IMG/VR virus record: IMGVR_UViG_3300046507_000667
Location: 62,001 to 126,000 of that record
DNA: 64,000 bases
Direction: 5' to 3' (one strand)
Shown here: piece after piece, positions 3,040 through 47,581 of the stretch
Numbering within the stretch: position 1 is the first letter of the stretch
Layout of the letters: every line of letters begins with the position of its first letter
Notes under the pieces: model-generated
Databases searched by the model: none
Seen by the model: only the letters and a program-made list of their open reading frames with translations
Told to the model about the DNA's origin: nothing
Translations under genes and position numbers: made by a program

Positions 3040-4217
3040 ATGGCAATTACAGCTAAAAATCGTAAAAAGGCAGAGAAGTTAATCCTTGATACTTTAAGTA
3101 AGCTTGAGCCATCAGGTATGAATACCGAGAAGTATCGAAAGATCTTCTCGGAAATGTCGGATAAACAGTTCGTAGATTACTTCAAAAAACTTAAAGAAGA
3201 TCGTAATGCACACTTATATGTGGAGTGTGACTTATACGGTAAAAATCAGATTACTTTAGGATCAATCCAAAAAGCTGCTGATTTCTTGAAAGTACCTTTA
3301 GAAGAATATGTTTATATTCGACATAAAACACCTGATGGAACTCCTATCAGAAGTAAGTTCCGTGTACCGGTGATGTATATTCATTTGAAGCGTAATTGCG
3401 CCCATATACTAGAAATAGTGTATGCGTATTACATTAATTGCTGGAAGTCCCTAAAGCTAGTTTAATCTAGATTGAGTATAGCCAAAAGCTATATTTCTAT
3501 ACAATGGGTAATCAGCAGCACTATTTTAACTTATACTTTACCTCGTAAAAATAAATAGTGTTCAACGACTATTCCTGCAATGGAAGTACATATCAAGTGA
3601 TATGGAAATGTGTAATATCCTTCTAGGATAATGATATAGTCTCTTCTTATGTGAAAGCATAAGCTGATAGTTAACAACTATCAATAAGATTAAGTATGCA
3701 ACAGATCCAGACTAAGAAAGTCAAGACTTCTATTGATATTGAATCTGGTAATGTACGTTCGAATATTACTGGTAACTTAAATCAAGATAATAAGTCGGGC
3801 CGATTCACTGATGCAGATACACAAGCTTTTCTATCTATCTTATCTGATAAGAAACTTGAAATTGGAAAGACTGGTAAGAAAGAATCTGCTATTCTTAATG
3901 AATTACTATTGGCTCGTGGTGGTAATGCTGCTATGAAAGCTGCAATGTCAAAGAATATTTCACTCTTTGGCGCTGCTTCCCTACAAGACGTTGATGTAGG
4001 TACATCATATGCAGCAGTATCACCGGGAATTAGTAGTGCATCAGCTATTACAGCAGAACCAGCTAAGAATACTATTGATGCATTCTTAATTGGTGCTGGT
4101 ATGAAGTCTGACATCATCTATAAGTCATTAGTTACACTACAAGGTGAAGCTAGTAAGTCTGAAGGTGGTGATGGTGATGAATTTGCATCATTAAGCAGAG
4201 CATTAGGTCGTGAATAA
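3040..4217 (+). CDS. RNA polymerase beta-like C-terminal subunit, probably virion RNAP; join(3040..3393,3699..4217), about 290 aa
   Basis: Joined sequence MYIHLKR|QQIQTKK...GRFTDADTQAFL resembles the beta C-terminal YMLKL..H....K...GGQRFGEME..AL region; two ORFs separated by an intron core. Confidence 0.7.
3394..3698 (+). ncRNA. Group I intron (IA2-like), ORF-less, cis
   Basis: P1 GCGU/GCGC; P2 with GAAA loop; P AATTGCTGGAA; Q AATCAGCAGC; P6a CACTATTT/AAATAGTG; R TTCAACGACTA; S GATATAGTC. Confidence 0.9.
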
Positions 4218-8650: not shown

Positions 8651-9412
8651 TTATGCTGTTGGTGCAGCTACGATTTGCTTAATTGTGTCAATAAGTCTAT
8701 GCTTAAATGCAATTAAGAAATCGGGGAAGTGTTCTGATGAAAGAACGTTAGACATAAGAGTTTGATATGATTCACATGATTCCGAATCAAATAACTCATC
8801 AAGTGCTTCTCGTTCTTCAGAAGTTAGGTCGATATAATCAAAGAATGTACCAATATCAACATTTTCAGCACCTAGTACTGTATTAGCAATATCTAATGCA
8901 TTAACGATAAGAATGATATATTCAGGATTATCTAGATTAAGCTCAGTCTTGATATTCTGATATACTAGATCTTTTCTAGGTGTAGATTGCTTAAACTCAG
9001 GAGCAAGAGTCTTCTTATTGTTATAAGCAAAGCTAATTAGATAAGTTAGTAGATTCTCACGGAATCCAATATAGAAAGTATTGTAAATCAAATTAACTAA
9101 GAAGCGTGCCTGTGGTGCTTCATTAAATTGGTCTGAAATAGCTTTCTTATCAACACCAAAATCTTGACAGAATTGATTGACAATTAATGTATTAGCGGCA
9201 GCTTCTACATTAGTTGCATCATCAATTTGATCTTGATCTAAATCAAATCTATCTTTAATAAAATCAACTTTAGTTACAATCGTATTGTATAAATCATTAG
9301 ATGGTTTATTTGCAATAAGATCTTGGCGGTTTGATAGATATTCATCTAATCCTTCTTGTAAAATGGAGGCTGTCTCCTTTACAAGAATACTGTCACTGTC
9401 TAAACTAAACAT
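8651..9412 (-). CDS. Hypothetical acidic protein, 253 aa
   Basis: ORF closely coupled to the end of terminase exon 2. Confidence 0.8.
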   Translation of the reverse strand: MFSLDSDSILVKETASILQEGLDEYLSNRQDLIANKPSNDLYNTIVTKVDFIKDRFDLDQDQIDDATNVEAAANTLIVNQFCQDFGVDKKAISDQFNEAPQARFLVNLIYNTFYIGFRENLLTYLISFAYNNKKTLAPEFKQSTPRKDLVYQNIKTELNLDNPEYIILIVNALDIANTVLGAENVDIGTFFDYIDLTSEEREALDELFDSESCESYQTLMSNVLSSEHFPDFLIAFKHRLIDTIKQIVAAPTA

Positions 9413-9419
9413 AATTGTC

Positions 9420-10838
9420 TCACGATCTAAAATGTCTTAAAGGGTCAGCACTAGCTTTACCAGCTAGCATATTGGCTAAATTAGTATCGATACCACTTGA
9501 CTGTGGTCCCTTTACCTTATTATTTTTCTGTCCTAGAATCTTAGCTAGCTGGTCTGGTGGTACACCGTCTAGGATCATTTGGGTTAGTTCAGCAAAGTCA
9601 TGATTTTGACCCTTATTAACTGCAGGATCATCCACAACTTTTCGAGTAATAGCATTGAAATTCTTAGCATTTTGAGCAACTTTAGCTCGTGTTCTTAAGA
9701 ATCTACCAATATTATTACCATATCGAACTACATATTTTACGAATAAGTATGAGAATAAGACGTCATCATGCATACCTACTTCGTGGTCAATACGTCCATT
9801 CTTATAGATAAGACCTTTGACATCATCATATAACTCTGGAATTGCTAAAAGCTCAGGTTCATCTGCAACGATTTCTTTAAGAATATCGATCATTAGAGGA
9901 CGTGAGGCTTTATCAGTAGTAATACCATACTTAATACTATCTGTCTTAGTAGCAGGATTATTAGCTGTTTTGTCTTTATCAGCTAATTTATATTCATAGT
10001 AAATATTCTTAGGAATTACATCTAAGAGATTTTCTACCAGACCTTTACCATAACTATTAAATTCAGGGACTACAATACAGTTAGGCAATTCTTCTTGAAC
10101 TAGCTGTGCAATAAGAGAGCTATATACATTAATATCAATAGTATTATGCTTAAATACTGCTACAGGAGCAAAATCTTTTTCAGGATCAGTAATAGTAAAT
10201 GCTGAATTATCTGCATCAAGACCACCTGCAGTATCAACACCCATGAAATAGACTTTCTCTTTCTTTAGTTCTTCATAGAGTACGATAGGGAATTTGAAAG
10301 TACGGATTTCACCAGTACTCTTGATTACCTTCTTGATATCCATATATTTGATACCAATAGGTGTTCTTTTCTTACTATCAATAATATCTAATTGCTCTTC
10401 AGTAAAGACCGAATTATCTGATGATTTTGTCCATTGTAGGTCAATTTCACGTTTGATAATAGCACGGTCATTATTAAGAACACGACATTCTTTCTTATAC
10501 CACTCTTCATCAAGACCTAATTGTTTCCATGTATAAGAAATATACAAGAAGTCATTTGATGAGTTAGTAGCAATGTAATCTTTTAATATATCACGGTCCC
10601 AATCATACATCTCTTCAACGAAGACACAAGCGTTATCTATAAGACCTTTACAGAAAGCGCCCGCCGGATTGTCAATGTTTGAAGGAGTTGTAGAGATAAT
10701 ACGACCGTGTGGTCTACCATGAGCTTCAGCAATTTCAGATACTTTTGAAATAGCTGGACCTGCTGACTTAAAGATAATATCGTTATACTTTAAGAATGCG
10801 AATTCGTCAGGCCAATAGATCGGGATAGACATACCACG
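9420..10838 (-). CDS. terL: Terminase large subunit exon 2 (Walker B plus RNase H-like nuclease), 472 aa
   Basis: RGMSIPIYWPDEFAF (Walker B), STTP, GVDTAGG, HDDVLFS; starts right after the intron terminal G at 10839. Confidence 0.9.
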   Translation of the reverse strand, partial: RGMSIPIYWPDEFAFLKYNDIIFKSAGPAISKVSEIAEAHGRPHGRIISTTPSNIDNPAGAFCKGLIDNACVFVEEMYDWDRDILKDYIATNSSNDFLYISYTWKQLGLDEEWYKKECRVLNNDRAIIKREIDLQWTKSSDNSVFTEEQLDIIDSKKRTPIGIKYMDIKKVIKSTGEIRTFKFPIVLYEELKKEKVYFMGVDTAGGLDADNSAFTITDPEKDFAPVAVFKHNTIDINVYSSLIAQLVQEELPNCIVVPEFNSYGKGLVENLLDVIPKNIYYEYKLADKDKTANNPATKTDSIKYGITTDKASRPLMIDILKEIVADEPELLAIPELYDDVKGLIYKNGRIDHEVGMHDDVLFSYLFVKYVVRYGNNIGRFLRTRAKVAQNAKNFNAITRKVVDDPAVNKGQNHDFAELTQMILDGVPPDQLAKILGQKNNKVKGPQSSGIDTNLANMLAGKASADPLRHFRS

Positions 10839-10976
10839 CTTATGTTATATGATAATCGTTAATTATCAAGCTTATGCTTTCACATAAGATCAGACTATAT
10901 CTTCACCTGTTAAGGGTTCTACATTTCCATTCTACTTAGAATGTACGTAATAGTCGTTGAACAAATTCATCAAAAT
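10839..10976 (-). ncRNA. 3' half of a group I intron (P6a 3' strand, P7-P9, terminal G)
   Basis: TTGATGAATTTG-TTCAACGACTA...GAAGATATAGTCT-GATCTTATGTGAAAGCATAAGC...CATAAG|CGTGGT. Confidence 0.9.
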
Positions 10977-10987
10977 TTTTGTATGTT
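10976..10987 (-). promoter_or_regulatory. Late-type promoter-like motif for the 3' intron half
   Basis: AACA-TACAAA-AA; AACA exact, -1 position is A rather than T; predicted +1 at 10976. Confidence 0.5.
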
Positions 10988-10989
10988 CC

Positions 10990-11017
10990 AAAAAAAACCT
11001 ATGATTTCTCATAGGTT
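10990..11017 (-). terminator. Intrinsic terminator
   Basis: AACCTATGA-GAAA-TCATAGGTT followed by a T run on the minus strand. Confidence 0.85.
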
Positions 11018-11032
11018 GCTAACTCCTAAGAG

Positions 11033-11662
11033 TTAGACTTCAAAGGTTTGAATGGTAACTCGGAAACGACCCGGAAGAGAATGTACTTCATCCGAATCAA
11101 GAGTTTTGAAAGTATGTGGACTTGACATAACTTTCTTACCAGTCAGTTTACCATCAATCTTTTCGATCATATCTACTACACGATCGTAATGCTCTTTCAG
11201 TTGATCTGCAAAATCTACTTGATCATGCTTATTGCGAAGTTCCCATTCACCATGAAGAAGTTCTTCCAAATAGTGAGGTAGATGTGTAAGGGAATAGTCT
11301 ATGGAAATACCATCCAATCCCTTTTCATCCAATTCTTCTTTCGAAACATCACGAGTTACTGACCAATCAGCAGCATCACTCAGTTGTCCATAGGACGCAT
11401 AAGGATATTGATTATGCCAAACTCGGTCATCGCCAACTATTTGGCTCTTGAAGATAAAGCCATCATGCTTAGGCTCTGCATCTTCACGATCCCATTCATT
11501 ACGAACCTTATGGTGTTCTGTACATTTCAACCAGAAAATGTGAATTCCTTTCAGAGTATTATCCCAAGGGAGATAAGTATTGCTCATCAAAGCATCATTA
11601 CCATTTGCATAATTGAAATGGACACGAATGAACGGAATGATCGAACCGACTTGAAAACGCAT
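11033..11662 (-). CDS. Hypothetical protein, 209 aa
   Basis: ORF with AAGGA SD. Confidence 0.8.
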   Translation of the reverse strand: MRFQVGSIIPFIRVHFNYANGNDALMSNTYLPWDNTLKGIHIFWLKCTEHHKVRNEWDREDAEPKHDGFIFKSQIVGDDRVWHNQYPYASYGQLSDAADWSVTRDVSKEELDEKGLDGISIDYSLTHLPHYLEELLHGEWELRNKHDQVDFADQLKEHYDRVVDMIEKIDGKLTGKKVMSSPHTFKTLDSDEVHSLPGRFRVTIQTFEV

Positions 11663-11688
11663 GATAATTTCCTTAAATAGAAGAATAG

Positions 11689-12060
11689 TTATTTAGGAGC
11701 AGTAAGACGAATTAGCGTCAATTCTGCATCCTTATAGTAGCCATGTGGATCATCCACTGTTCGGCATTGAATTAAAGCTTCTTCCAAGCTAGATGCTTGA
11801 TATTTGAATTCTTTTGTATCTGACCACCTACCTGTAGTTTTTCTTTGGATATGGTAGGTAGCTCTAATATTAGGCCACTTAATACAATGTAGCTCTGATA
11901 CCATACTGATGCCTTTCAATTTCCATTGAGCACCAATTTCGTCTTCCAAGATTCCAACAAGTGTTACTACATGCTCATGTGCTTGAAAATCAGTATCAAT
12001 TAGTTTTAAAGTACCTGTTGGCATAAGCCATTCAGTGAACTGATTGAAACGAGGTTTCAT
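11689..12060 (-). CDS. Hypothetical protein, 123 aa
   Basis: ATGA-coupled ORF. Confidence 0.75.
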   Translation of the reverse strand: MKPRFNQFTEWLMPTGTLKLIDTDFQAHEHVVTLVGILEDEIGAQWKLKGISMVSELHCIKWPNIRATYHIQRKTTGRWSDTKEFKYQASSLEEALIQCRTVDDPHGYYKDAELTLIRLTAPK

Positions 12061-12548
12061 AGCGTAATAGTAACTGCATCAGGAAACAGTTTTTGCAGAT
12101 GATTTTCCATTTCCTTACGACGAGCTTCACGAATATGAAAATCCGAATTTGGCGAATCATCACCAAGAAAGAATTCATATACTCGCTTTGGTTCTTCAAT
12201 TCCTTTTTCTTTTCGAAGCGCTATAAGCTTTTCACGCATAGGAGAAGGAGCATGATAAGTATGAACACGCTTAATTGCTTCATCAATACAATTAGTAATG
12301 GATTCTTCATTATCACCAAAGTATTGACCACTACCTTCTTGATAATTATGTAATTGGCGAATAGCAAAGCTAAATCCACCAACAGTCATAGTACGACGAA
12401 TACGAAGAAGTGATAGGAATCCTCCCGGATTATCCTTTACACCATATTCAATATAATTGAAAAGACCTTCTTTCAAAAGAACCATCATAGATGTCAGTTG
12501 CTTCTTAACTTGAAGTTCCTGATCAATCTTTTCTTGAGTCATCAGCAT
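12057..12548 (-). CDS. Hypothetical protein, 163 aa
   Basis: ORF in a tightly packed operon. Confidence 0.75.
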   Translation of the reverse strand: MLMTQEKIDQELQVKKQLTSMMVLLKEGLFNYIEYGVKDNPGGFLSLLRIRRTMTVGGFSFAIRQLHNYQEGSGQYFGDNEESITNCIDEAIKRVHTYHAPSPMREKLIALRKEKGIEEPKRVYEFFLGDDSPNSDFHIREARRKEMENHLQKLFPDAVTITL

Positions 12549-12554
12549 AATTCT

Positions 12555-12770
12555 TTACCGTTTAATTTCAGGAGGAAGAGCATTATAATAATGATAATTA
12601 GCAAGCCAACCATTAATCAATGCTTTAGCAAGAGTCTCATCTTCAGTGTAATACAATGAAGGCCAAGATTCCTTGACATACATATTGCAAAATCGTTGTC
12701 CAAGGCGAAGTTTATCTTGTTTCCTTGCATTATGGAGACTCAAGAATTTTGCATATGCTTCAGTAGTCAT
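12555..12770 (-). CDS. Hypothetical protein, 71 aa
   Basis: ATGA-coupled ORF. Confidence 0.75.
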   Translation of the reverse strand: MTTEAYAKFLSLHNARKQDKLRLGQRFCNMYVKESWPSLYYTEDETLAKALINGWLANYHYYNALPPEIKR

Positions 12771-13048
12771 TGATCACCCTCATCAAGCCACTTCATAATA
12801 CGTTCAAAAAGCGACTCCTTTACTTCACGAAATTCATTAACACAATGAAATCGCTTCTCTCCAGCACCCATAGTACGAAAGGTAATGCTAAACCAATCTC
12901 CAGTTCGATTATCGAAACAAGGATCGACATACTTAATGGAAGGACGATACTTTCCATTAGGAAGAAGACAAGTCCTAAAAGGACTATTTTCTTCTGCAAC
13001 CTTCTTAAGAACTTGTGTAAGTTCTTCATGGGTCATTGGACGGCTCAT
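12767..13048 (-). CDS. Hypothetical protein, 93 aa
   Basis: ORF with AAGGA SD. Confidence 0.75.
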   Translation of the reverse strand: MSRPMTHEELTQVLKKVAEENSPFRTCLLPNGKYRPSIKYVDPCFDNRTGDWFSITFRTMGAGEKRFHCVNEFREVKESLFERIMKWLDEGDQ

Positions 13049-13057
13049 GTCTTTTCC

Positions 13058-13309
13058 TTAATGACGAATAATTTTGAAATAGTCCGCAGTGATATTACCA
13101 GCACCTTCAAGGCGCTTGCTATTGTGACCAACCACTCCCCACACAATTGAAGCATTTTTATGTGAATCTACACTGTGGGCAGTTACCATAGCACGTTCAA
13201 GTACATCAAAGTTGGCGAACGGTTTGGTAAATTCAATGATACTACCAGTCTTAACGTTCATCTTCTTTCCAAAAATTAAAATGTTTATTAGGAAAGTGGG
13301 AGAGACCAT
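13058..13309 (-). CDS. Hypothetical protein; start possibly at MNVKTG
   Basis: ORF in operon. Confidence 0.65.
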   Translation of the reverse strand: MVSPTFLINILIFGKKMNVKTGSIIEFTKPFANFDVLERAMVTAHSVDSHKNASIVWGVVGHNSKRLEGAGNITADYFKIIRH

Positions 13310-13339
13310 TTAGATCTCTCCCTTCGTCAATCTGCTTGC

Positions 13340-14440
13340 TTATGCAAACGGATTGAAGAATTCATACCAACGACCATGGTTCAGACGATAGCTCGTTTGC
13401 ATGTTACGAAGCTTTTCAGCTTCGGTATACTTCCAATTGAACAGAATGTCCTTGAAGCCTTCGCCCAGCGTTTTCAGGCATTCACCTGCATCACGCAGAA
13501 CATAGAGCGTCTTGTCAACGATAAAACCACAAACCTTCTTGGTCTTATCGATAACATAGACAGTCACCTTCTTGGTACCATTCCATGCATACACACAAAC
13601 CGACTGAACACCTTCAATCGTCCAGTTGATTGCCTTACCAGCACCTTCAACAACGTCACCGCAGAAGTCGCCAATCTTGTCGAGGATCGTAACTTGTTCG
13701 ACCTTCGCATTCACGGCAGCATTTGCAATTTCTTCTTCAACATCGACACCAGCAGCATGCAGTTGCTCTTCGATAGCGCCTTTCAAGATCTCATTGTCCA
13801 CTGCTTCTTGGACCGATTCCGGCTTGGGCATCGATGCTGAAACTGCTTCTTGCACGATTTCCTTTGCGGGAAGATGTGCATGTTCTGCAGCATTAACGAT
13901 GTTAACCATCGCTTCAGCAGCATTAGCTACTTTCGATGCAATCGGACCGAGATCAGCAGATTCCTTCACTGCTTGAACTTGAGCCTTGATATCGACAACT
14001 TCGATATCTTTCGGAAGAATCAGCATGAAAAGTACGTTGTGATGCTTTTCATCGCTCGTAACCGAAACGATTTCTGCATCAGCACCGCATTCATGAGCGA
14101 TGTGTTGAAGACGAACTTCAACTTCATCACCATTGCTAGGTGCTGCAACTTCTTGACCATCGATTTTTGCATCAAGAGAAACATGCAGAATCTGAGCCTG
14201 ATGGCCATTCAGATCAAGTTGTTCTTCAAGTGCAAAGAACGAATCCTTGAACGTTGCTTGATACACTTTCAGCGATTCTTCCAGCTTGGTCAAGCTGAAT
14301 TTCGAAGCATCCGTATTGAAAGTCGGGATGACGACTTTGATGTCCTTCATCGAACGTGCAACCGGTTTCTTAGCCGAAACCTTCTTAGCTGCTGCGTTGA
14401 CGTTACCATTCTTTGCTGCGACGTTGATGTTCTTTGCCAT
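13340..14440 (-). CDS. Hypothetical protein, 366 aa, with Ala/Lys-rich N-terminus and amphipathic repeats near the C-terminus
   Basis: ORF after the early motif at 14524-14532. Confidence 0.85.
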   Translation of the reverse strand: MAKNINVAAKNGNVNAAAKKVSAKKPVARSMKDIKVVIPTFNTDASKFSLTKLEESLKVYQATFKDSFFALEEQLDLNGHQAQILHVSLDAKIDGQEVAAPSNGDEVEVRLQHIAHECGADAEIVSVTSDEKHHNVLFMLILPKDIEVVDIKAQVQAVKESADLGPIASKVANAAEAMVNIVNAAEHAHLPAKEIVQEAVSASMPKPESVQEAVDNEILKGAIEEQLHAAGVDVEEEIANAAVNAKVEQVTILDKIGDFCGDVVEGAGKAINWTIEGVQSVCVYAWNGTKKVTVYVIDKTKKVCGFIVDKTLYVLRDAGECLKTLGEGFKDILFNWKYTEAEKLRNMQTSYRLNHGRWYEFFNPFA

Positions 14441-14579
14441 GATTGAAAGAGACCTTATAGAGAATTAGAAGAGTTATTACTAAGTGTCTTGAATTTCGAA
14501 TATTTCTATTCGTGATCAGGTGAATAATATATCAGCATTATATGCTTTAATACGCTTATTTCACCGGATCATACAAATA

Positions 14580-15176
14580 TTACAAAGAGATAAAGCTACG
14601 TGCATTCAAAAGGAAGTCTTCAAATTCAGGAAGTTCCTTTTGCACATGAAGCAGATTGTTGAAGAGGCTCGTAAGGAATGCTGCCATATCTTCAGAAACT
14701 TCGATAGACGTACGGCCATTCAAACGATATACGATATTGACTTCCTGAACGATACTACAGATAATATCTGAAGCAGCATTAGCAAGATCTTTATCTTCAA
14801 ATCGTTCAATACGAGAAGCAATTGCAAGCAACGTTACAGCCGTATCATTCCAAAGGTGAATTCTCGGAAGATATGCTTCGAAGTTATACTTTAGATAGAT
14901 CTTGAATGATGTCAGATCGACTTCAGTACCTTCTTCCATTGCTCGTTCAATAGCATGCTGAGAAAGACGTGAAAGAGTCTTTTCAATTCTACTATCAGAA
15001 TTATCTCCCAACATACCTTGCTTCTTTAATTCTCCAACGAAATCTTTAATCACTTCATTAGTCTGAAGTTCTTCAAAGAAATTCAGAACACGAGAAGGAT
15101 CTTCCTTATCTAGCTTAATCAGCAGTGCAGCTGCTTTGTTAATGGCTTTATTCGTCAGATTGAAATTCTTCGACAT
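14580..15176 (-). CDS. Hypothetical protein, 198 aa
   Basis: ORF with AAGGA SD. Confidence 0.8.
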   Translation of the reverse strand: MSKNFNLTNKAINKAAALLIKLDKEDPSRVLNFFEELQTNEVIKDFVGELKKQGMLGDNSDSRIEKTLSRLSQHAIERAMEEGTEVDLTSFKIYLKYNFEAYLPRIHLWNDTAVTLLAIASRIERFEDKDLANAASDIICSIVQEVNIVYRLNGRTSIEVSEDMAAFLTSLFNNLLHVQKELPEFEDFLLNARSFISL

Positions 15177-15257
15177 GATTCTTTTTCCTTGAGAATGTTG
15201 GAATGCTTATATTGCGATCAAGGAAAAAATATATACTTATTAGCTATTTAAATACGA

Positions 15258-15491
15258 TTAATCGTTAGTCTGAATATTACCCAATTTCTTGGGAATTAAT
15301 ACTTCCTTAGCTACTTGCTCAAATTCGGGCCATAGCTTACGAAACTTGACAAAAGGAATAGAAATTGTTACTCCTTCAACTTCAATTTCAACTTCACGCT
15401 TTTCTTTATTTGCTTTGATAGATGATGACATTTTCTTTCCTAAATAGTTAACAAAAATCTCGACTCCGCATATCTGGGTCATAGGCACCAA
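15258..15491 (-). CDS. Hypothetical protein; start possibly at MSSSIK
   Basis: ORF after the early motif at 15496-15504. Confidence 0.65.
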   Translation of the reverse strand: MVPMTQICGVEIFVNYLGKKMSSSIKANKEKREVEIEVEGVTISIPFVKFRKLWPEFEQVAKEVLIPKKLGNIQTND

Positions 15492-15525
15492 GATAATAAT
15501 ATATTTCTGAAGTATTAGTTAATGC

Positions 15526-15638
15526 TTGATGAATTTGCTGCTGATTGCCATAGATACTAATTTACATTTTTCCGGAATGCTAGTTAGGATCTTTACGGGG
15601 TTCCAGCAATTAATAGAATTTATACAGAGCCGTAAGTA
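15526..15638 (-). ncRNA. 5' half of a group I intron (P1/IGS, P3-P5, P6a 5' strand)
   Basis: Exon ACAGGGU pairs with IGS GCUCUGU; P AATTGCTGGAAC; Q AATCAGCAGC; ends CAAATTCATCAA. Confidence 0.9.
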
Positions 15639-16307
15639 ACCCTGTTTGTCTGCTTGTTCTTCAGAAATTGGCTGACCATTGACGTCGATCTTATTATTAC
15701 GCTGCACACTATGTACTGATTCAAGATTATCAGTATCACCTCTATCTGCTAAGGCATCTTGAATGTATTTAGGTAAATGTAATGTAATATCCTTAAATCG
15801 CTTTAAGTTATTCTTAGCATCACCTAAGCTCTTATTTGCAAAGAGCATATTAGTATTTTTAGTACTAAAGTTATAGATGTAATTTAGTGCTGCTGCAATA
15901 GAAATTGTTTTACCACGCTGACGAGATAGTAAGCATATCAAGTCAAAGTTATTAAAAATTGCCCAAGTAATAGCTAAGTTACCCGGATGCAATTCAAATT
16001 TAACAGTACCACCCGGAGCTACAATCTTTACTACTTCTCTTAGATAGTAGTAAGGATTTTTTGTAATTTCCGTAATGATTTTTGTCTTTTGTAACTCAGT
16101 TAGATTTTTTCTATGAGGATCAATACCTTTTAAACTTTTATCATAGAGTCGTAGAAAGAACTTGTTATTTTTAATACCACGTTCCTTCAAATACTTAAAC
16201 ATCTTGATGAAAGAAAGGTTCTTAGTCTCGGTGTCAATTACATAGTCACCATAGTCCGTTTCCCCATAGATAGCTTTATTGTAAGCTGCTTTACTAAGCG
16301 ATACCAT
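15639..16307 (-). CDS. terL: Terminase large subunit exon 1 (N-terminal ATPase), 223 aa
   Basis: NPYYYLRE, LHPGNLA, LLSRQRGKT Walker A; coding ends at ...ADKQG where the intron begins. Confidence 0.9.
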
Positions 16308-16335
16308 AAGCTTTCCTTTAAAAAGAGGGATTTAC

Positions 16336-16347
16336 TATGTGAGTGTT
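16336..16347 (-). promoter_or_regulatory. Late-type promoter for terL exon 1
   Basis: AACA-CTCACA-TA. Confidence 0.7.
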
Positions 16348-16434
16348 CAACTTCTCCGTTCACACAAAAAATTCAAGAAAATTGAAAAAAAAAGAAGCCC
16401 CGTTAGAGGCTTCTTCCTAGCTATAAGCTGGAAG

Positions 16435-17772
16435 TTACTTCATTTTGACATCTGCAACAATCGCTAAAAGAACTGACTGTTGTTGTGCATTGAGAGTGAA
16501 GCCACTCTTGATGCCAGAGAGGAATGCAATCTTTTCCTCTTTCGTGATGTCAAGTCTAGCACCAGCTCCAAGAATTGCATCCTTGTAAGTAGCATAGACT
16601 TTCTTGTTGATACTGAAGAATTGGCATTCATTCATTTCTTCAATTTCAACAAGCTTCAGCTTAATGAGCCTATCGACAGCCTGAACGAATGCATATTTGG
16701 TTGCACGCAATCCATTTTCCAATTCATCGAGATAAATCGGAGTAGGATGAACCATGATACGTTCGATCAATGTCGTTTCAAGCAAAGAGAAAGCTACTTC
16801 AGTCTTTGGCTTGGGAGGACGAACAACTGCTCGACGAACAATGTCAGGAGTCTTTTTGCTTGAAGTTTCTGATTCAGGCTCTTTGACAGGAGGTGTTTCT
16901 GTCGGTTCTTCTTTCCTAGGCACGCTCGGAGTTTCTTCCGGTTGTGGTTGAGGAACTGGTTTCGAAGGTACATCCTCGGAAGGAGTGTTATTTGAAACCA
17001 ATGCCAGTTGAGTAGGAAATTTTTCTACTGGCGTGATCATCGGAGAACCTGACTTTGTGTTCGAATACTTCTGAACGATTTCAGTAGTAGGAGAGACCAT
17101 CTTGGCATCCTTCTTTCCAGAGTTCTTATCAGCGTGCATTGCGCTTAATCCGATTGATCTTTCAACATTCAATCCCAATGCATTAAGAATCTTGTCAGCC
17201 ATTTTGTCATCGGGATTGATTTGGTAGGAATAGCGACGATGCGTTCCTTCACGAATAATCATACCAGTCTTATACAACGTAGACAAAGTAGCACTCGTGA
17301 TATTAAACGGTACACCAATTTTCTTGCTGATCATTCCAGAATCATACTTAATTCCATAATTATCAAACAAGAGTTGAAGTACCTCATACAGGATGGTAAA
17401 TTTCCGTTCTTTCTTATCCTTTGTAAGAGAATAAGTTTGATTTACAACGTCATAATCAAAGCCATAATAATGACAAAGACGTTCAACGTCACCAATAGTT
17501 GCAGGAAGGTCATACTTCCTTTCACCATTTGAAGCCTTAAAGGTAATGAGAAAACCGGGATAAACATTGGTCGTGAGATACATACGCTCAATGTAATCTT
17601 CAGTCTTATCATTCCACCCAAGCAGCTTATGAATCTTCTCACAAGAAAGACTACCTTTCTCTTTAAGAAGATTAAGAATATTCAGGAAGTTCTCCTTAGT
17701 ATTCTTAGAGTTAAACTCTGCTGCAGCTGCTTCATTTTCCATTTCGACAACTGACAAAGCCATTGCTTTCAT
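16435..17772 (-). CDS. Putative DNA-binding protein with several wHTH-like segments and a Pro/Glu-rich linker
   Basis: SGMISKKIGVPFNITSATLSTLYKTGMIIREG is wHTH-like; early motif at 17835. Confidence 0.55.
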   Translation of the reverse strand: MKAMALSVVEMENEAAAAEFNSKNTKENFLNILNLLKEKGSLSCEKIHKLLGWNDKTEDYIERMYLTTNVYPGFLITFKASNGERKYDLPATIGDVERLCHYYGFDYDVVNQTYSLTKDKKERKFTILYEVLQLLFDNYGIKYDSGMISKKIGVPFNITSATLSTLYKTGMIIREGTHRRYSYQINPDDKMADKILNALGLNVERSIGLSAMHADKNSGKKDAKMVSPTTEIVQKYSNTKSGSPMITPVEKFPTQLALVSNNTPSEDVPSKPVPQPQPEETPSVPRKEEPTETPPVKEPESETSSKKTPDIVRRAVVRPPKPKTEVAFSLLETTLIERIMVHPTPIYLDELENGLRATKYAFVQAVDRLIKLKLVEIEEMNECQFFSINKKVYATYKDAILGAGARLDITKEEKIAFLSGIKSGFTLNAQQQSVLLAIVADVKMK

Positions 17773-17867: not shown

Positions 17868-18233
17868 TTATACTTGCCAAGCTAAGTTAGTGACATCGTT
17901 ATTAGTAAGATCACCATCTTTGAAAACTAGCTTATTCAAGTTATTGGGACACTTGCCAAGAAATGCTTCAGCAACTAGCCATGCTACTCGAAAGCTTTTT
18001 GATTTACCTTCCTTACTAAGATTCACACCAATATAGTCAGTAGTATGACTAAGGGCCATCATTTTGCCCTTAATAATGGTAGTCTTTTCAGGTTGATTCA
18101 ATGCAATAGTTGCACCACCTTGACTTAATACTTTTACTTTTCTTGGACGATCTTCTGAACGCACTTTACCAGTATTACTAACTGAATAAGAACCTTCATA
18201 GCCAACTACAGGCTTCCATACAACAGTATTCAT
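17868..18233 (-). CDS. NUMOD4 plus degenerate HNH protein
   Basis: WKPVVGYEGSYSVSNTGKVRS (NUMOD4); VAWLVAEAF...LVFKDGDLTNNDVTNL.W lacks the His residues of VHRLVA/NHKDG. Confidence 0.75.
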   Translation of the reverse strand: MNTVVWKPVVGYEGSYSVSNTGKVRSEDRPRKVKVLSQGGATIALNQPEKTTIIKGKMMALSHTTDYIGVNLSKEGKSKSFRVAWLVAEAFLGKCPNNLNKLVFKDGDLTNNDVTNLAWQV

Positions 18234-43100: not shown

Positions 43101-45533
43101 ATAGTTGCCAATGATTTTACCAAAGAGTCTAAAAGGGCTAGATTTTATGATACATGTCCAGCATGTAGAACTTCTAAAAGAAGTCCTTTGGATAAGGTAA
43201 AAGAAGATATCAGAATTGCTACTAAAGATAGATTATTACTTTTAGAATATGGTGGAACAACACATACCCCATCTAAATTTAAATGTAAAATCTGTAATTA
43301 TGATGATATCAAAATATCTACGCATAGTTTATTAGGAAATTTAAAGTCAAGATCAAATTCTAATTCATGGGGATGTGCTGTTTGTTCAAAAAAGAAACAG
43401 AAAACTACTCAAGAATTTAATAAAGAAATTGATCAACTTTTTAATGGTAATATTGCACTTATTTCAGAATATGTAAATGTAGGGACTTATGTATCTTTGA
43501 AATGTAATAAATGTACATATGAATGGAATACCATGCCATCAACTATTCTAGGCGGATCCCAGTGTCCAGCATGCTTAAGAAGTTTTAGAGATTCTAAGCA
43601 AATTAGAAGAGTGATTGAATTTCTTGATAAATATGAAGTACCTTTTGAAAGAGAAGTAACTTTTGAAGGTCTAGTTTATAAAAAGCAACTGTATTTTGAT
43701 TTTTGTATTGAAACAGAAGATACTTATTTCTTGATTGAATTCGATGGACAGCAGCATTTTAGAGGCTGGCAAGGTAATGAAGATAATCTAAATGAAAACC
43801 AAATTCGAGATAATATCAAGAATGATTTTTGTAAAGATAATGATCTTCCTTTACTTCGTTTGCATTATAAAATGACTCTGTCTGAAATTGATAAGGCTAT
43901 TTATGATTTTCTCTTCAGTCCAGAATAAACTTCTTTAATTGCTGGAAACCCTCTAACAAAGGCAATCAGCAGCGAAGCCCTTAATTGGGAACGTTCAACG
44001 ACTATTATGTACTTATCAAATGATAAGGAAATAGGAAGCACCTAATTAGGTGAAGATATAGTCTATTCTTATATGAAAATATAAGTTATGAGCTAATGAC
44101 TCATAGTAAATATAAAAGTAAATTCAGATGATGCATATACGCCTGAAATTCGTGCATATGATAAGTCAATGCTAGGTGTGTATGGTATTTATACGCCTAT
44201 TTCATCACAAGTTGGTGTAAGTCGTGGTCTTGTAATGAATCCACGCTATCATTCAACTCGTGGCTATCTAAAGGATATGGATCTAAAGACTGCTCGTGCT
44301 GATAATTTATTCACTGCGGCAGAACTTCTAAATGTCTTTACACCAAAGCATGCTGATAGTCCTCGTGCTATTATGGCTTCAGTACAAGGTCGTCACTTGA
44401 CACCAACAAAAGTACAGGATCCTTACCTAGTTGGTAGTGGTGTTGATAAAGCACTTCCGCATATGGTTGGTCAAGACTTCGCCTTTAAAGCAACAGATGA
44501 TGGCACAGTTATTAAGATTGACCAGAAGAAAGAACTAGCAATTCTACAATATAAGAATGGCGAGAAAGCAGCAATTGATTTCTCACCAAAACCAGCTAAA
44601 AATAGTGGTGGTGGCTTCTTTATTCAGAATAAGCTTGATCTTAATGCAGAAGTTAAGGTAGGCTATAAATTCAAGAAAGGTGATATTCTTGCTAAGGATG
44701 ATAACTTCTTCAAGGATATGCTAGATGGTTCTACTGGCTTTGCGGCTGGTCGTCTATCAAAGCTTGCTGTTCTCGCTCTACCTGAGACATTCGAAGATTC
44801 GTGTGTTATTACACAACAAGTTGTAAGTGATATGTCATCGGATATTATTAATGAACGTGAAGTAGTTTTAAAGAAAAATTCACGTATCATTAGTGTGGCT
44901 AACGTTGGTGATGAAGTTGAAGTTGATACACCACTAGTTGTATTCGAAGAAGTAGGTTCTGATGAAACATTAGCTGTTGCTGCTTTAGAAAAGCTTGATG
45001 CACAAACTAAAGGCACTATCAGTGAACTAGCTCGTTCGACTGCAAAGTCAAAGTTTGCTGGTAAGATTTTCGCTATTCGTATTTATTACAATGCAGAATT
45101 AGATGAAATGCATCCAACGCTAAAGAATATTGTCGAGCAGTACAAAGACAAATATGATTCTAAGGCAAAGATCATTCAGACACTGAAGAAGGATGAAATT
45201 ATTCAGCAACCTTCAACTGAAAAGCATAATGGTGAAAAGCTATTAGGTAATGATGTTGATGGTGTTGTTATCAAGTTCTTCATCATGCATGATGATAAGA
45301 TGGCTATTGGTTCAAAGGTAACTGCATTCACTTCACTAAAGTGTATTATTGCAGAGACTATTCCAGAAGGAAAGGAACCATATACAGAGTACAATAAGGA
45401 TGAAGAACTATCAATGTTCCTAAGTCCATTATCTATTGTCTCTCGTATGACTACTGACTTCTATCTCTTAGGCTTTAGTAATAAAGTTATTATTGAACTA
45501 GAGAATCAAGTATTAGATCTTCTAGAAGAATAA
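40168..45533 (+). CDS. Large RNA polymerase beta-like subunit, probably virion RNAP; join(40168..42916,44119..45533), about 1387 aa
   Basis: GFLYINGNK, spliced FKGPSGLNSDDAYT, DSPRAIMASVQGRH, TFEDS.VI, GSKV....LKC.I, SPLSIVSRM motifs. Confidence 0.88.
42917..44118 (+). mobile_element. Group I intron carrying a homing endonuclease in the P1 loop
   Basis: Exon UCUGGAU pairs with IGS GUCCAGA (43918-43924); P, Q, R and S elements at about 43935-44060; terminal G at 44118 restores the frame. Confidence 0.9.
42957..43928 (+). CDS. Intron-encoded homing endonuclease: Zn-ribbon repeats plus Vsr/PD-(D/E)XK-like domain
   Basis: Repeated C..C units; FEREVTF...FDF...LIEFDGQQHF C-terminal nuclease motif. 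Confidence 0.8.
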   Translation: MRKALTTEKFQENVNTIFGADTYTVISEYTKSSGYISIKHSKCGNTFDIVANDFTKESKRARFYDTCPACRTSKRSPLDKVKEDIRIATKDRLLLLEYGGTTHTPSKFKCKICNYDDIKISTHSLLGNLKSRSNSNSWGCAVCSKKKQKTTQEFNKEIDQLFNGNIALISEYVNVGTYVSLKCNKCTYEWNTMPSTILGGSQCPACLRSFRDSKQIRRVIEFLDKYEVPFEREVTFEGLVYKKQLYFDFCIETEDTYFLIEFDGQQHFRGWQGNEDNLNENQIRDNIKNDFCKDNDLPLLRLHYKMTLSEIDKAIYDFLFSPE

Positions 45534-47507: not shown

Positions 47508-47581
47508 GCGACTATAGTTCAGACGGATAGAACACAAGCCTTCTAAGCTTGGGGTCACTGGTTCGAATCCAGTTAGTCGCA
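47508..47581 (+). tRNA. tRNA-Arg(UCU), CCA not encoded
   Basis: Acceptor GCGACTA/TAGTCGC; anticodon arm CAAGC-CTTCTAA-GCTTG; T arm GGTTCGAATCC; late motif at 47476-47487. Confidence 0.92.

Follow-up and report, generated by a model that had tools for sequence, protein, structure and literature searches.

A group I intron in the terL gene of a phage related to phiR1-37 appears to hold a nine-gene early transcription unit in place of a homing endonuclease

The stretch of 64,000 nucleotides analysed here (the window) corresponds to bases 62001-126000 of IMGVR_UViG_3300046507_000667, the complete record of an uncultivated jumbo phage (249,347 bp with direct terminal repeats), the sequence of which is present in several rhizosphere metagenomes. 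Its terL gene, which lies on the minus strand like the genes around it, is divided by a group I intron of 4,800 nt (15638-10839, minus strand), and the 4,552-nt loop closed by the P6 helix of this intron appears to contain a self-contained early transcription unit of nine genes. Phage group I introns usually consist of a ribozyme and a homing endonuclease, or of a bare ribozyme, and the nine genes occupy the slot in which the endonuclease would be found. We give a probability of about 70% to the reading that the cargo genes are expressed early and TerL late, the latter through terminator read-through and cis-splicing.

A sequence-only reading of the window had pointed to nine co-oriented open reading frames (ORFs) in the L6a loop of the intron, at 11033-15504. 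The nine ORFs in the loop of a terL group I intron are borne out by ORF calls, codon-frame scores and intron comparison, and the cargo does lie within those coordinates, the full feature being wider (15638-10839). The assignment to L6a can be kept only as far as an intron loop is concerned, with the cargo at the apex of P6 and a separate P6a helix that could not be shown.

The split terL gene and its intron

The N-terminal ATPase part of TerL is encoded by an ORF at 15519-16307 (phrog_32359, E 7.5e-90, residues 21-223) and the remainder by an ORF at 9420-10832 (phrog_2), the exons having been searched one by one. Both parts are closest to Yersinia phage phiR1-37 (62% identity for the N-half and 51% for the C-half), followed by the Bacillus phages AR9, PBS1 and BpSp. 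All four are jumbo phages, each of which encodes two multisubunit RNA polymerases. When positions 9000-17000 were compared with the DNA of cultured phages, zero matches were obtained.

Exon 1 (15639-16307, minus strand) consists of 223 codons with Walker A inside and ends in ...CAG GGU at the 5' splice site; exon 2 (9420-10838, minus strand) consists of 472 codons and a stop, starts CGU GGU AUG and has Walker B about 8 codons in. In tblastn comparisons exon 1 runs colinear, as far as residue 223, with homologues that lack the intron, and the end of exon 1 (residue 223) and the start of exon 2 (RGM) are adjacent codons, without a gap, in the uninterrupted terL genes of loci L005, L010, L020-L031 and others (more than 20 loci beside L005). 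This colinearity sets the junction at U15639/C10838. Removal of the intron gives a predicted unbroken TerL of 223 + 472 = 695 residues (...DKQG/RGMSIPIYWPDEF...), in which the intron position is, according to the motifs, between Walker A and Walker B of a single ATPase domain.

The intron as a whole was delimited by the Rfam match to its 3' core, by splice-site features and by comparison with orthologues and paralogues. Its 5' half (15526-15638, minus strand) comprises P1, the P3 5' strand, P4, an extended P5, P4' and the P6 5' strand (15534-15526), and its 3' half (10839-10973, minus strand) comprises the P6 3' strand (10973-10965), J6/7, P7, P7.1, P3', P8, P7', P9, P9.1 and a terminal G. The 3' core was matched by RF00028 at 10871-11021 (36.3 bits, E 1.2e-6, at permissive thresholds); the 5' half, with P1, P3, P4 and P6, was identified via orthologous and paralogous introns. 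In local alignments both halves match, column for column, four complete ORF-less introns of the same genome, which score 70-94 bits in Rfam. P1 (ACAGGGU/GCUCUGU) pairs U15639 with G as a U.G pair at the 5' splice site, the final intron nucleotide is G10839, and both P1 and the terminal G are identical in the orthologous introns of phiR1-37 and of L006, a metagenomic relative. The 9-bp P6 closes the long loop at the point where the paralogues carry a short P6 hairpin. For RNAfold and MAFFT the ribozyme halves were joined by a 4-nt linker. Judged by eye, the intron is apparently T4-like and of the IA2 type.

Among the three orthologous introns there are compensatory changes in P6 (AUUCAUCAA/UUGAUGAAU in the window, UAAUGAAAAA/UUUUUCAUUA in phiR1-37 and UAUAGACAAAA/UUUUGUCUAUA in L006) and in P3 (UUCUAU/GUAGAA, UUCCGU/GCGGAA and UACC/GGUA), and P9 and P9.1 covary as well; these pairings were read by eye from three sequences and are unscored. 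In a diverged strain (run X4), exon 1 has ten synonymous changes over 392 nt and the ribozyme core one change over about 242 nt, at a site that is unpaired in the predicted minimum free energy fold. From the alignment, the covariation and the pattern in this strain we conclude that the ribozyme is intact and under purifying selection, and we infer that it splices.

Promoters, terminators and the proposed order of expression

Two exact copies of the motif ATATATTAT-N6-G lie within the loop, both on the minus strand. The first, P_E1 (15489-15504, predicted start G15489), has c1 and c2 downstream, and the second, P_E2 (14517-14532, predicted start G14517), precedes c3 and has c3 to c9 downstream. 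The sequence-only reading had located early-type motifs at 15496-15504 and 14524-14532, and these coordinates are correct, the first motif beginning 22 nt after the end of the P6 5' strand at 15526. P_E2 has the upstream CGTAT element, and its sequence comes closest to those of the promoters within the phiR1-37 and L006 introns. There are 16 copies of ATATATTAT in the window as compared to 2.9 expected, all on the strand of the local genes, and 56 in the genome, every one of them followed by N6-G. The motif equals the annotated promoters of phiR1-37 and the consensus AAATATATATTAT-(6N)-G+1 of the AR9 early promoters, which was defined experimentally and is read by the virion RNA polymerase; the early promoters of phiR1-37 are of the same kind (PMC5312081).

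The cargo unit is closed by an intrinsic terminator of tandem hairpins and U8 (10988-11038, minus strand; -19.7 kcal/mol, z -4.9), and the terminator that had been noticed in the cassette is thereby recovered. Its last hairpin (11017-10996) has a 9-bp stem and a GAAA loop and runs into U8, a second hairpin stands ahead of it, and the whole is located 16 nt before the P6 3' strand. By eye, AUCUAUGG in the P5 region (15551-15558, minus strand) could pair with the 3' arm of the terminator hairpin (10996-11004, minus strand) over 8 bp, two of them wobble pairs; if this pairing were real, weakening of the terminator would be restricted to late transcripts, the ones that carry the 5' half.

Upstream of exon 1, directly downstream of a strong terminator at 16418-16389, there is an AR9-type late promoter, AACA-N6-TA (16336-16347, minus strand), with a predicted start at A16336, 29 nt before the terL start. 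The late consensus of AR9 is AACA-N6-TA(g), and the authors who defined it could identify no late consensus for phiR1-37 (PMC5312081). AACA-N6-TA(g) is enriched upstream of genes in the window phage, itself a phiR1-37 relative: 68 of the 159 copies of AACA-N6-TA in the genome fall within the 11.5% that is non-coding, and 50 are at most 80 nt upstream of genes. The suggestion that the layout ties DNA packaging to two separately regulated late transcripts found no support, as the promoter at 16347-16336 is the only good late match. The sole late-like motif near exon 2 is AACA-N6-TG (10846-10835, minus strand), in the last intron nucleotides and 3 nt before ATG 10832. It was rejected as an exon 2 promoter because it is a rare variant, lies downstream of the ribozyme core and is not conserved in the phiR1-37 or L006 introns; it is probably there by chance and, if used, would produce a near-leaderless mRNA for the C-half of TerL.

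With these elements, expression of the locus might proceed as follows. In the early phase the virion-borne RNA polymerase, to judge from the promoter consensus, would start at P_E1 and P_E2 and give rise to the nine cargo proteins, while the terminator would shield the 3' ribozyme core, exon 2 and the downstream late genes from cargo transcription. In the late phase the non-virion polymerase would start at 16347-16336 and transcribe exon 1 and the intron, and a fraction of these transcripts would pass the internal terminator. P6 and P3 could then bring the ribozyme halves together across the cargo, and cis-splicing would join ...DKQG to RGMSIP... (in the RNA, ...CAGGGU to CGUGGUAUG) to yield the 695-aa TerL.

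The nine cargo genes

The nine ORFs between the terL halves are all on the minus strand and fill 90% of the loop, with 4.1 kb of coding sequence. Their codon-frame scores range from 0.48 to 0.79, as compared to 0.68 +/- 0.17 for the genes of the genome, -1.5 +/- 0.49 for off-frame controls and -0.35 to 0.08 for overlapping ORFs on the plus strand. Good ribosome-binding sites precede six of the nine; those of c3 and c7 are weak, and c8 is coupled to c7 by an ATGA overlap of its start with the c7 stop. Strain differences in the coding sequence of the cassette number 15, 10 of them synonymous and 5 nonsynonymous. Contigs from four further rhizosphere samples cover the cassette, and no cassette-less joint was found in contigs from four DNA runs.

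Gene c1 (57 aa, 15258-15431) most likely starts at ATG 15431, which we prefer to TTG 15491 because the ATG has a good ribosome-binding site, because the TTG lies upstream of the predicted transcription start G15489, and because a 1-nt insertion upstream of the ATG in strain X4 would break the longer TTG frame. No family and no phage homologue was found for c2 (198 aa, 14580-15176), and no homologue for c4 (83 aa, 13058-13309), c7 (163 aa, 12057-12548) or c8 (123 aa, 11689-12060). The product of c3 (366 aa, 13340-14440) has a Lys/Ala-rich N-terminus, and the gene has a GC content of 45.5% (GC3 44%) as compared to 36 +/- 3.5% for the genes of the genome, a composition that the other eight cargo genes match; this suggests that c3 is more recent or more foreign in origin than the others. 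The product of c5 (93 aa, 12767-13048) is 52% identical to a hypothetical protein of the Ralstonia jumbo phage RsoM2USA. That of c6 (71 aa, 12555-12770) belongs to phrog_6714, of unknown function, and has homologues in Burkholderia phages BcepSauron and BcepSaruman, Ralstonia phage RP13 and Pseudomonas phage Lu11. The product of the last gene, c9 (209 aa, 11033-11662), falls in a widespread family of proteins of about 200 aa, so far uncharacterised, with more than 120 clusters, many of them on contigs of jumbo-phage size, and a nearly invariant signature (EHH...DGF...WHNQYPxASYGQLSD). The ribosome-binding site and AUG of c4 lie within a perfect 10-bp hairpin at 13298-13322 (minus strand; -18.8 kcal/mol, z -4.15), which might act in the control of translation or as a site of processing within the cassette.

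In tblastn searches of cultured phages nothing was found for c2, c3, c4, c7 or c8; c1 was left out of the phage and large-protein searches. A word-index protein search with c3, and then an exhaustive HMMER search of 1.84 billion representative proteins, returned c3 itself alone. Searches of PDB sequences with c2, c3, c7, c8 and the c9 family gave nothing significant, and c1-c9 have neither paralogues in the phage's own genome nor homologues flanking 77 related terL loci. Structure prediction, which had been proposed as a check on all nine proteins, was informative for c9. The c9 model is confident (pLDDT 94) and matched no nuclease fold or other solved fold in the PDB (best Foldseek E-value 0.21; VIA-align Z <= 5.1, from a helical hairpin alone); c9 may thus have an enzyme or ligand-binding fold that is common in large phages and so far uncharacterised. 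An AlphaFold model of c3 made without an alignment was unusable (pLDDT 41), and the ESM Atlas models of c2 and c9 were of low confidence and had no usable match.

Orthologous introns and the exchange of cargo

Introns occur at the identical terL codon in the window phage, in phiR1-37 (L001) and in L006. All three combine the ribozyme with an early promoter a short way into the P6 loop and a terminator at the loop's other end. The cargo differs from one to the next: g144 (526 aa) in phiR1-37, an unrelated ORF of 453 aa in L006 and nine genes in the window, with no similarity between g144 and either c1-c9 or the L006 ORF. The same layout with unrelated cargo in three orthologues means that the halves are conserved while the cargo varies, which is the pattern that a synteny check was to look for, and the comparison fits the earlier proposal that the intron loop has served as a landing site for accessory genes. 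That proposal is also consistent with the homologues of c5, c6 and c9, which are free-standing hypothetical genes of unrelated large phages that grow in soil and plant Proteobacteria (Ralstonia, Burkholderia, Xanthomonas, Rhizobium, Dickeya and Pseudomonas). For the window phage itself, these homologues point to a host among the soil Burkholderiales, Ralstonia or Xanthomonas-like bacteria.

The phiR1-37 locus (90178-92127 of its record; 3179-5128 of L001) is annotated as genes g143 and g145 for the two halves, with g144 between them and no intron feature, and the same group I intron can be recognised in it. It shares with the window the terL codon, P1, the core, the terminal G, the early promoter after the P6 5' strand and the terminator at the P6 3' strand, and differs in having one ORF and a loop of 1,732 nt as compared to 4,552 nt here. 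A P1-anchored pattern scan gave no further members of the lineage: apart from the L006 contig, its matches were to phiR1-37 or fragments nearly identical to it, to a second contig of the window phage and to unrelated introns that resemble these in P1; a scan with a 14-mer pattern was unspecific.

Points against this reading and alternative explanations

Several observations weigh against an intact intron that splices around an early unit. Rfam covers the 3' half alone, at 36 bits against a gathering threshold of 50, and at that threshold finds nothing at the terL intron, though two other group I introns of the window, both compact, are detected by it; the low score can be attributed to the 4.5 kb that separates the halves. 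The reading frame of exon 1 continues for 39 codons into the intron, across P1 to P6, so that coupled translation could disturb folding. The seven public runs that contain the sequence are all DNA, with no RNA run among them. For the products of c1, c2, c3, c4, c7 and c8 the collections searched contain no homologue, nor is there a structure model good enough to use, and a new kind of endonuclease or maturase may therefore hide among them. The main uncertainty is the terminator, as strong termination at predicted terminators has been reported for AR9 (PMC5312081) and an efficient terminator within the intron would starve exon 2 of transcript.

The sequence-only reading had found no homing endonuclease in the cassette. 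None is recognisable in c1-c9, and the absence rests on negative searches in a set that includes six proteins without homologues. Against Pfam, PHROGs, NCBIfam and PADLOC, c1-c9 gave sub-threshold noise and, for c6, phrog_6714; nothing resembled an endonuclease, whether LAGLIDADG, GIY-YIG, HNH, His-Cys, PD-(D/E)XK or Vsr-like. The same PHROG search did detect the phrog_559 endonuclease in the DnaB intron of this genome (E 1e-68) and those in the terL introns of L070, L027, L011 and L019 (E 1e-18 to 1e-77). These four and L075 are distant relatives in which terL introns at the same or neighbouring codons carry phrog_559 or HNH_3 endonucleases. No protein family was matched by g144 or by the 453-aa ORF of L006. 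Nothing points to an IStron or transposon insertion: no transposase (Pfam, PHROGs), terminal repeats or IS features were found, and no direct or inverted repeats flank the cargo.

We nevertheless had to consider that one of the proteins without relatives, most plausibly c3, is a new type of endonuclease or maturase and that the other eight genes are hitch-hikers. The gene lies directly behind the ancestral-looking P_E2, in the same slot as g144 and the 453-aa ORF of L006, and has a weak colinear similarity to the latter, the one hint of common descent among the three cargoes (BLASTP E 0.011; Smith-Waterman z 3.3, reached by 1 of 500 shuffles). Both proteins have Lys/Ala-rich basic segments that could bind nucleic acid, and the persistence of the intron at one site in three diverged phages suggests that it has some means of maintenance. 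Such an identity for c3 is unlikely all the same, given that it has no nuclease motif or family match and no relative among the 1.84 billion proteins, that g144 resembles neither c3 nor the L006 ORF, and that the c3 model is too poor to lend support.

The position of the terminator bears on a second alternative, that splicing occurs in trans between RNAs that are mainly separate, one with exon 1 and the 5' half and the other with the 3' half and exon 2, paired via P6 and P3. The 3' piece would come from cargo transcripts that pass the terminator, or from an unrecognised promoter. A canonical terminator 16 nt before the P6 3' strand, at a position conserved in the three orthologous introns, would fit this arrangement, as would the reported efficiency of such terminators with AR9-type polymerases (PMC5312081). 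P6 is unusually long and perfect (9-11 bp in all three introns), which would aid bimolecular assembly, and read-through transcripts from P_E1 and P_E2 would include the 3' half and exon 2. The T4 td intron, when split in the same loop, has reportedly been demonstrated to trans-splice in experiments. However, there is no conserved promoter between the terminator and the P6 3' strand in any of the three introns, the motif at 10846-10835 cannot supply the 3' half because it is downstream of the ribozyme core, and the early promoters are mistimed for a late gene. Partial read-through with cis-splicing is the simpler account, and we regard trans-splicing as distinctly improbable.

It is very unlikely that the intron is dead and that TerL consists of two polypeptides, of 262 aa and 470 aa, which assemble after translation. 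Both halves are ORFs with ATG starts and are separate genes in the phiR1-37 record, the AACA-N6-TG motif ends 3 nt before ATG 10832, and the nrdA gene of Aeromonas phage Aeh1 offers a precedent for the assembly of a split gene product (PMC3045599). The ribozyme core, however, is intact, covarying and under purifying selection by the evidence above, and the late-like motif is unconserved in phiR1-37 and L006. The N-half would finish with 39 residues translated from the intron, and the break would fall inside one ATPase domain, with Walker A and Walker B on different polypeptides. No ribosome-binding site lies ahead of ATG 10832, and CGU GGU, the two codons 5' of it, restore a GRG motif that is conserved in intron-less homologues; together these favour splicing over two polypeptides.

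That the intron promoters are unused and the nine genes are expressed within the late terL precursor alone, or never, is very unlikely: P_E1 does lack the CGTAT element seen upstream of many early promoters, and a predicted AR9 early promoter with a single deviation from the consensus was inactive, but both intron promoters match the core consensus exactly, N6-G included, the spacing is kept in 56 of 56 genomic copies, 16 of 16 window copies are on the local-gene strand, the orthologous introns hold the same promoter in the same place, and in AR9 an intron gene behind a promoter of this kind was shown by experiment to be early (PMC5312081).

Evolution and significance of the arrangement

From the comparisons above, this lineage of terL introns appears to have swapped its endonuclease slot for an ordinary early transcription unit. 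The cargo would have evolved by replacement and accretion while the ribozyme halves were kept. Having no recognisable endonuclease of its own, the intron would have been inherited vertically or mobilised in trans. Free-standing endonucleases can mobilise in trans introns that lack their own, and there is a free-standing 121-aa gene for an endonuclease with NUMOD4 and HNH domains at 17868-18233 (minus strand), about 1.5 kb upstream of terL exon 1.

Cargo within an essential gene would be protected from loss, as an imprecise deletion would destroy terL. We suggest, tentatively and as a doubtful extension of the reading preferred here, that the P6 loop is a gene-acquisition site, a "safe harbour" protected by the ribozyme and shielded from deletion, in which early modules are swapped or accumulated (one gene in phiR1-37 and L006, nine here) and TerL output and the onset of packaging are gated by terminator read-through or by assembly of the ribozyme in trans.

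If the intron splices, a translated insert of 4.5 kb and an internal terminator are tolerable at P6, intron loops can act as protected storage for accessory genes, probably ones for host takeover or anti-defence, and neither the intron nor the nesting is noticed where annotation pipelines give the halves of terL as independent genes, as happened in the phiR1-37 record. The arrangement also raises the question of how AR9-type late polymerases get past an intrinsic terminator, and this is directly testable in phiR1-37, which can be cultivated and shows this layout around a single cargo gene.

Related introns and other features of the genome

Seven related group I introns are carried by the genome, four of them compact and without an ORF. 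Beside the terL intron they are located in the window at 3382-3663 (plus) and 43854-44085 (plus) and in the genome at about 12.5 kb (minus), 44.3 kb (plus), 37.5 kb (plus) and 173.4 kb (minus). The intron in a DnaB-like helicase gene encodes a 329-aa phrog_559 endonuclease and that in a family B DNA polymerase gene a 187-aa ORF without a family; both of these ORF-bearing introns escape Rfam even at E = 5. A tRNA gene was found at 47508-47581 (plus) of the window (Rfam, 72 bits).

Comparison with other known systems

In the td, nrdB and sunY introns of T4 (I-TevI, I-TevII), an ORF with its own promoter forms a loop on a peripheral helix, which is P6a in td and nrdB. The terL intron of the window belongs to this structural type of phage group I intron, likewise with looped-out coding sequence, and differs in that the T4 introns carry one endonuclease gene in about 1 kb whereas this one carries nine non-endonuclease genes and an internal terminator in 4.8 kb.

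The nesting of an early-promoter gene in an intron of a late gene has a counterpart in AR9, where g190 lies within an intron of g189 (PMC5312081); the difference is that g190 is alone in its intron, is annotated as an HNH homing endonuclease and interrupts the gene for the beta subunit of the virion RNA polymerase. The terL gene of AR9 itself has four short introns, none with such cargo. Introns are frequent in terL, as in the Bastillevirinae and the gut "Jug" jumbo phages, in which splicing was confirmed by RT-PCR or metatranscriptomes (PMC11878797, PMC12880540), but those introns have a mean of 802 +/- 342 nt or are about 206 nt long, and any cargo is an endonuclease, e.g., phrog_559.

Group I ribozymes with two or more protein genes other than those of homing endonucleases are known from the IStrons, in which mobility is supplied by IS200/IS605 transposon cargo (PMC4227781), unlike the terL intron with its lack of IS features. 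Group I introns with several ORFs also exist in fungal mitochondria, where five ORFs in one intron were reported as the highest count and called unprecedented; all of those are LAGLIDADG endonucleases in an organelle genome, with no internal promoters or terminators (PMC11835236). With nine genes, no recognisable endonuclease, and promoters and a terminator of its own, the operon in this phage group I intron exceeds the highest ORF count that we found reported.

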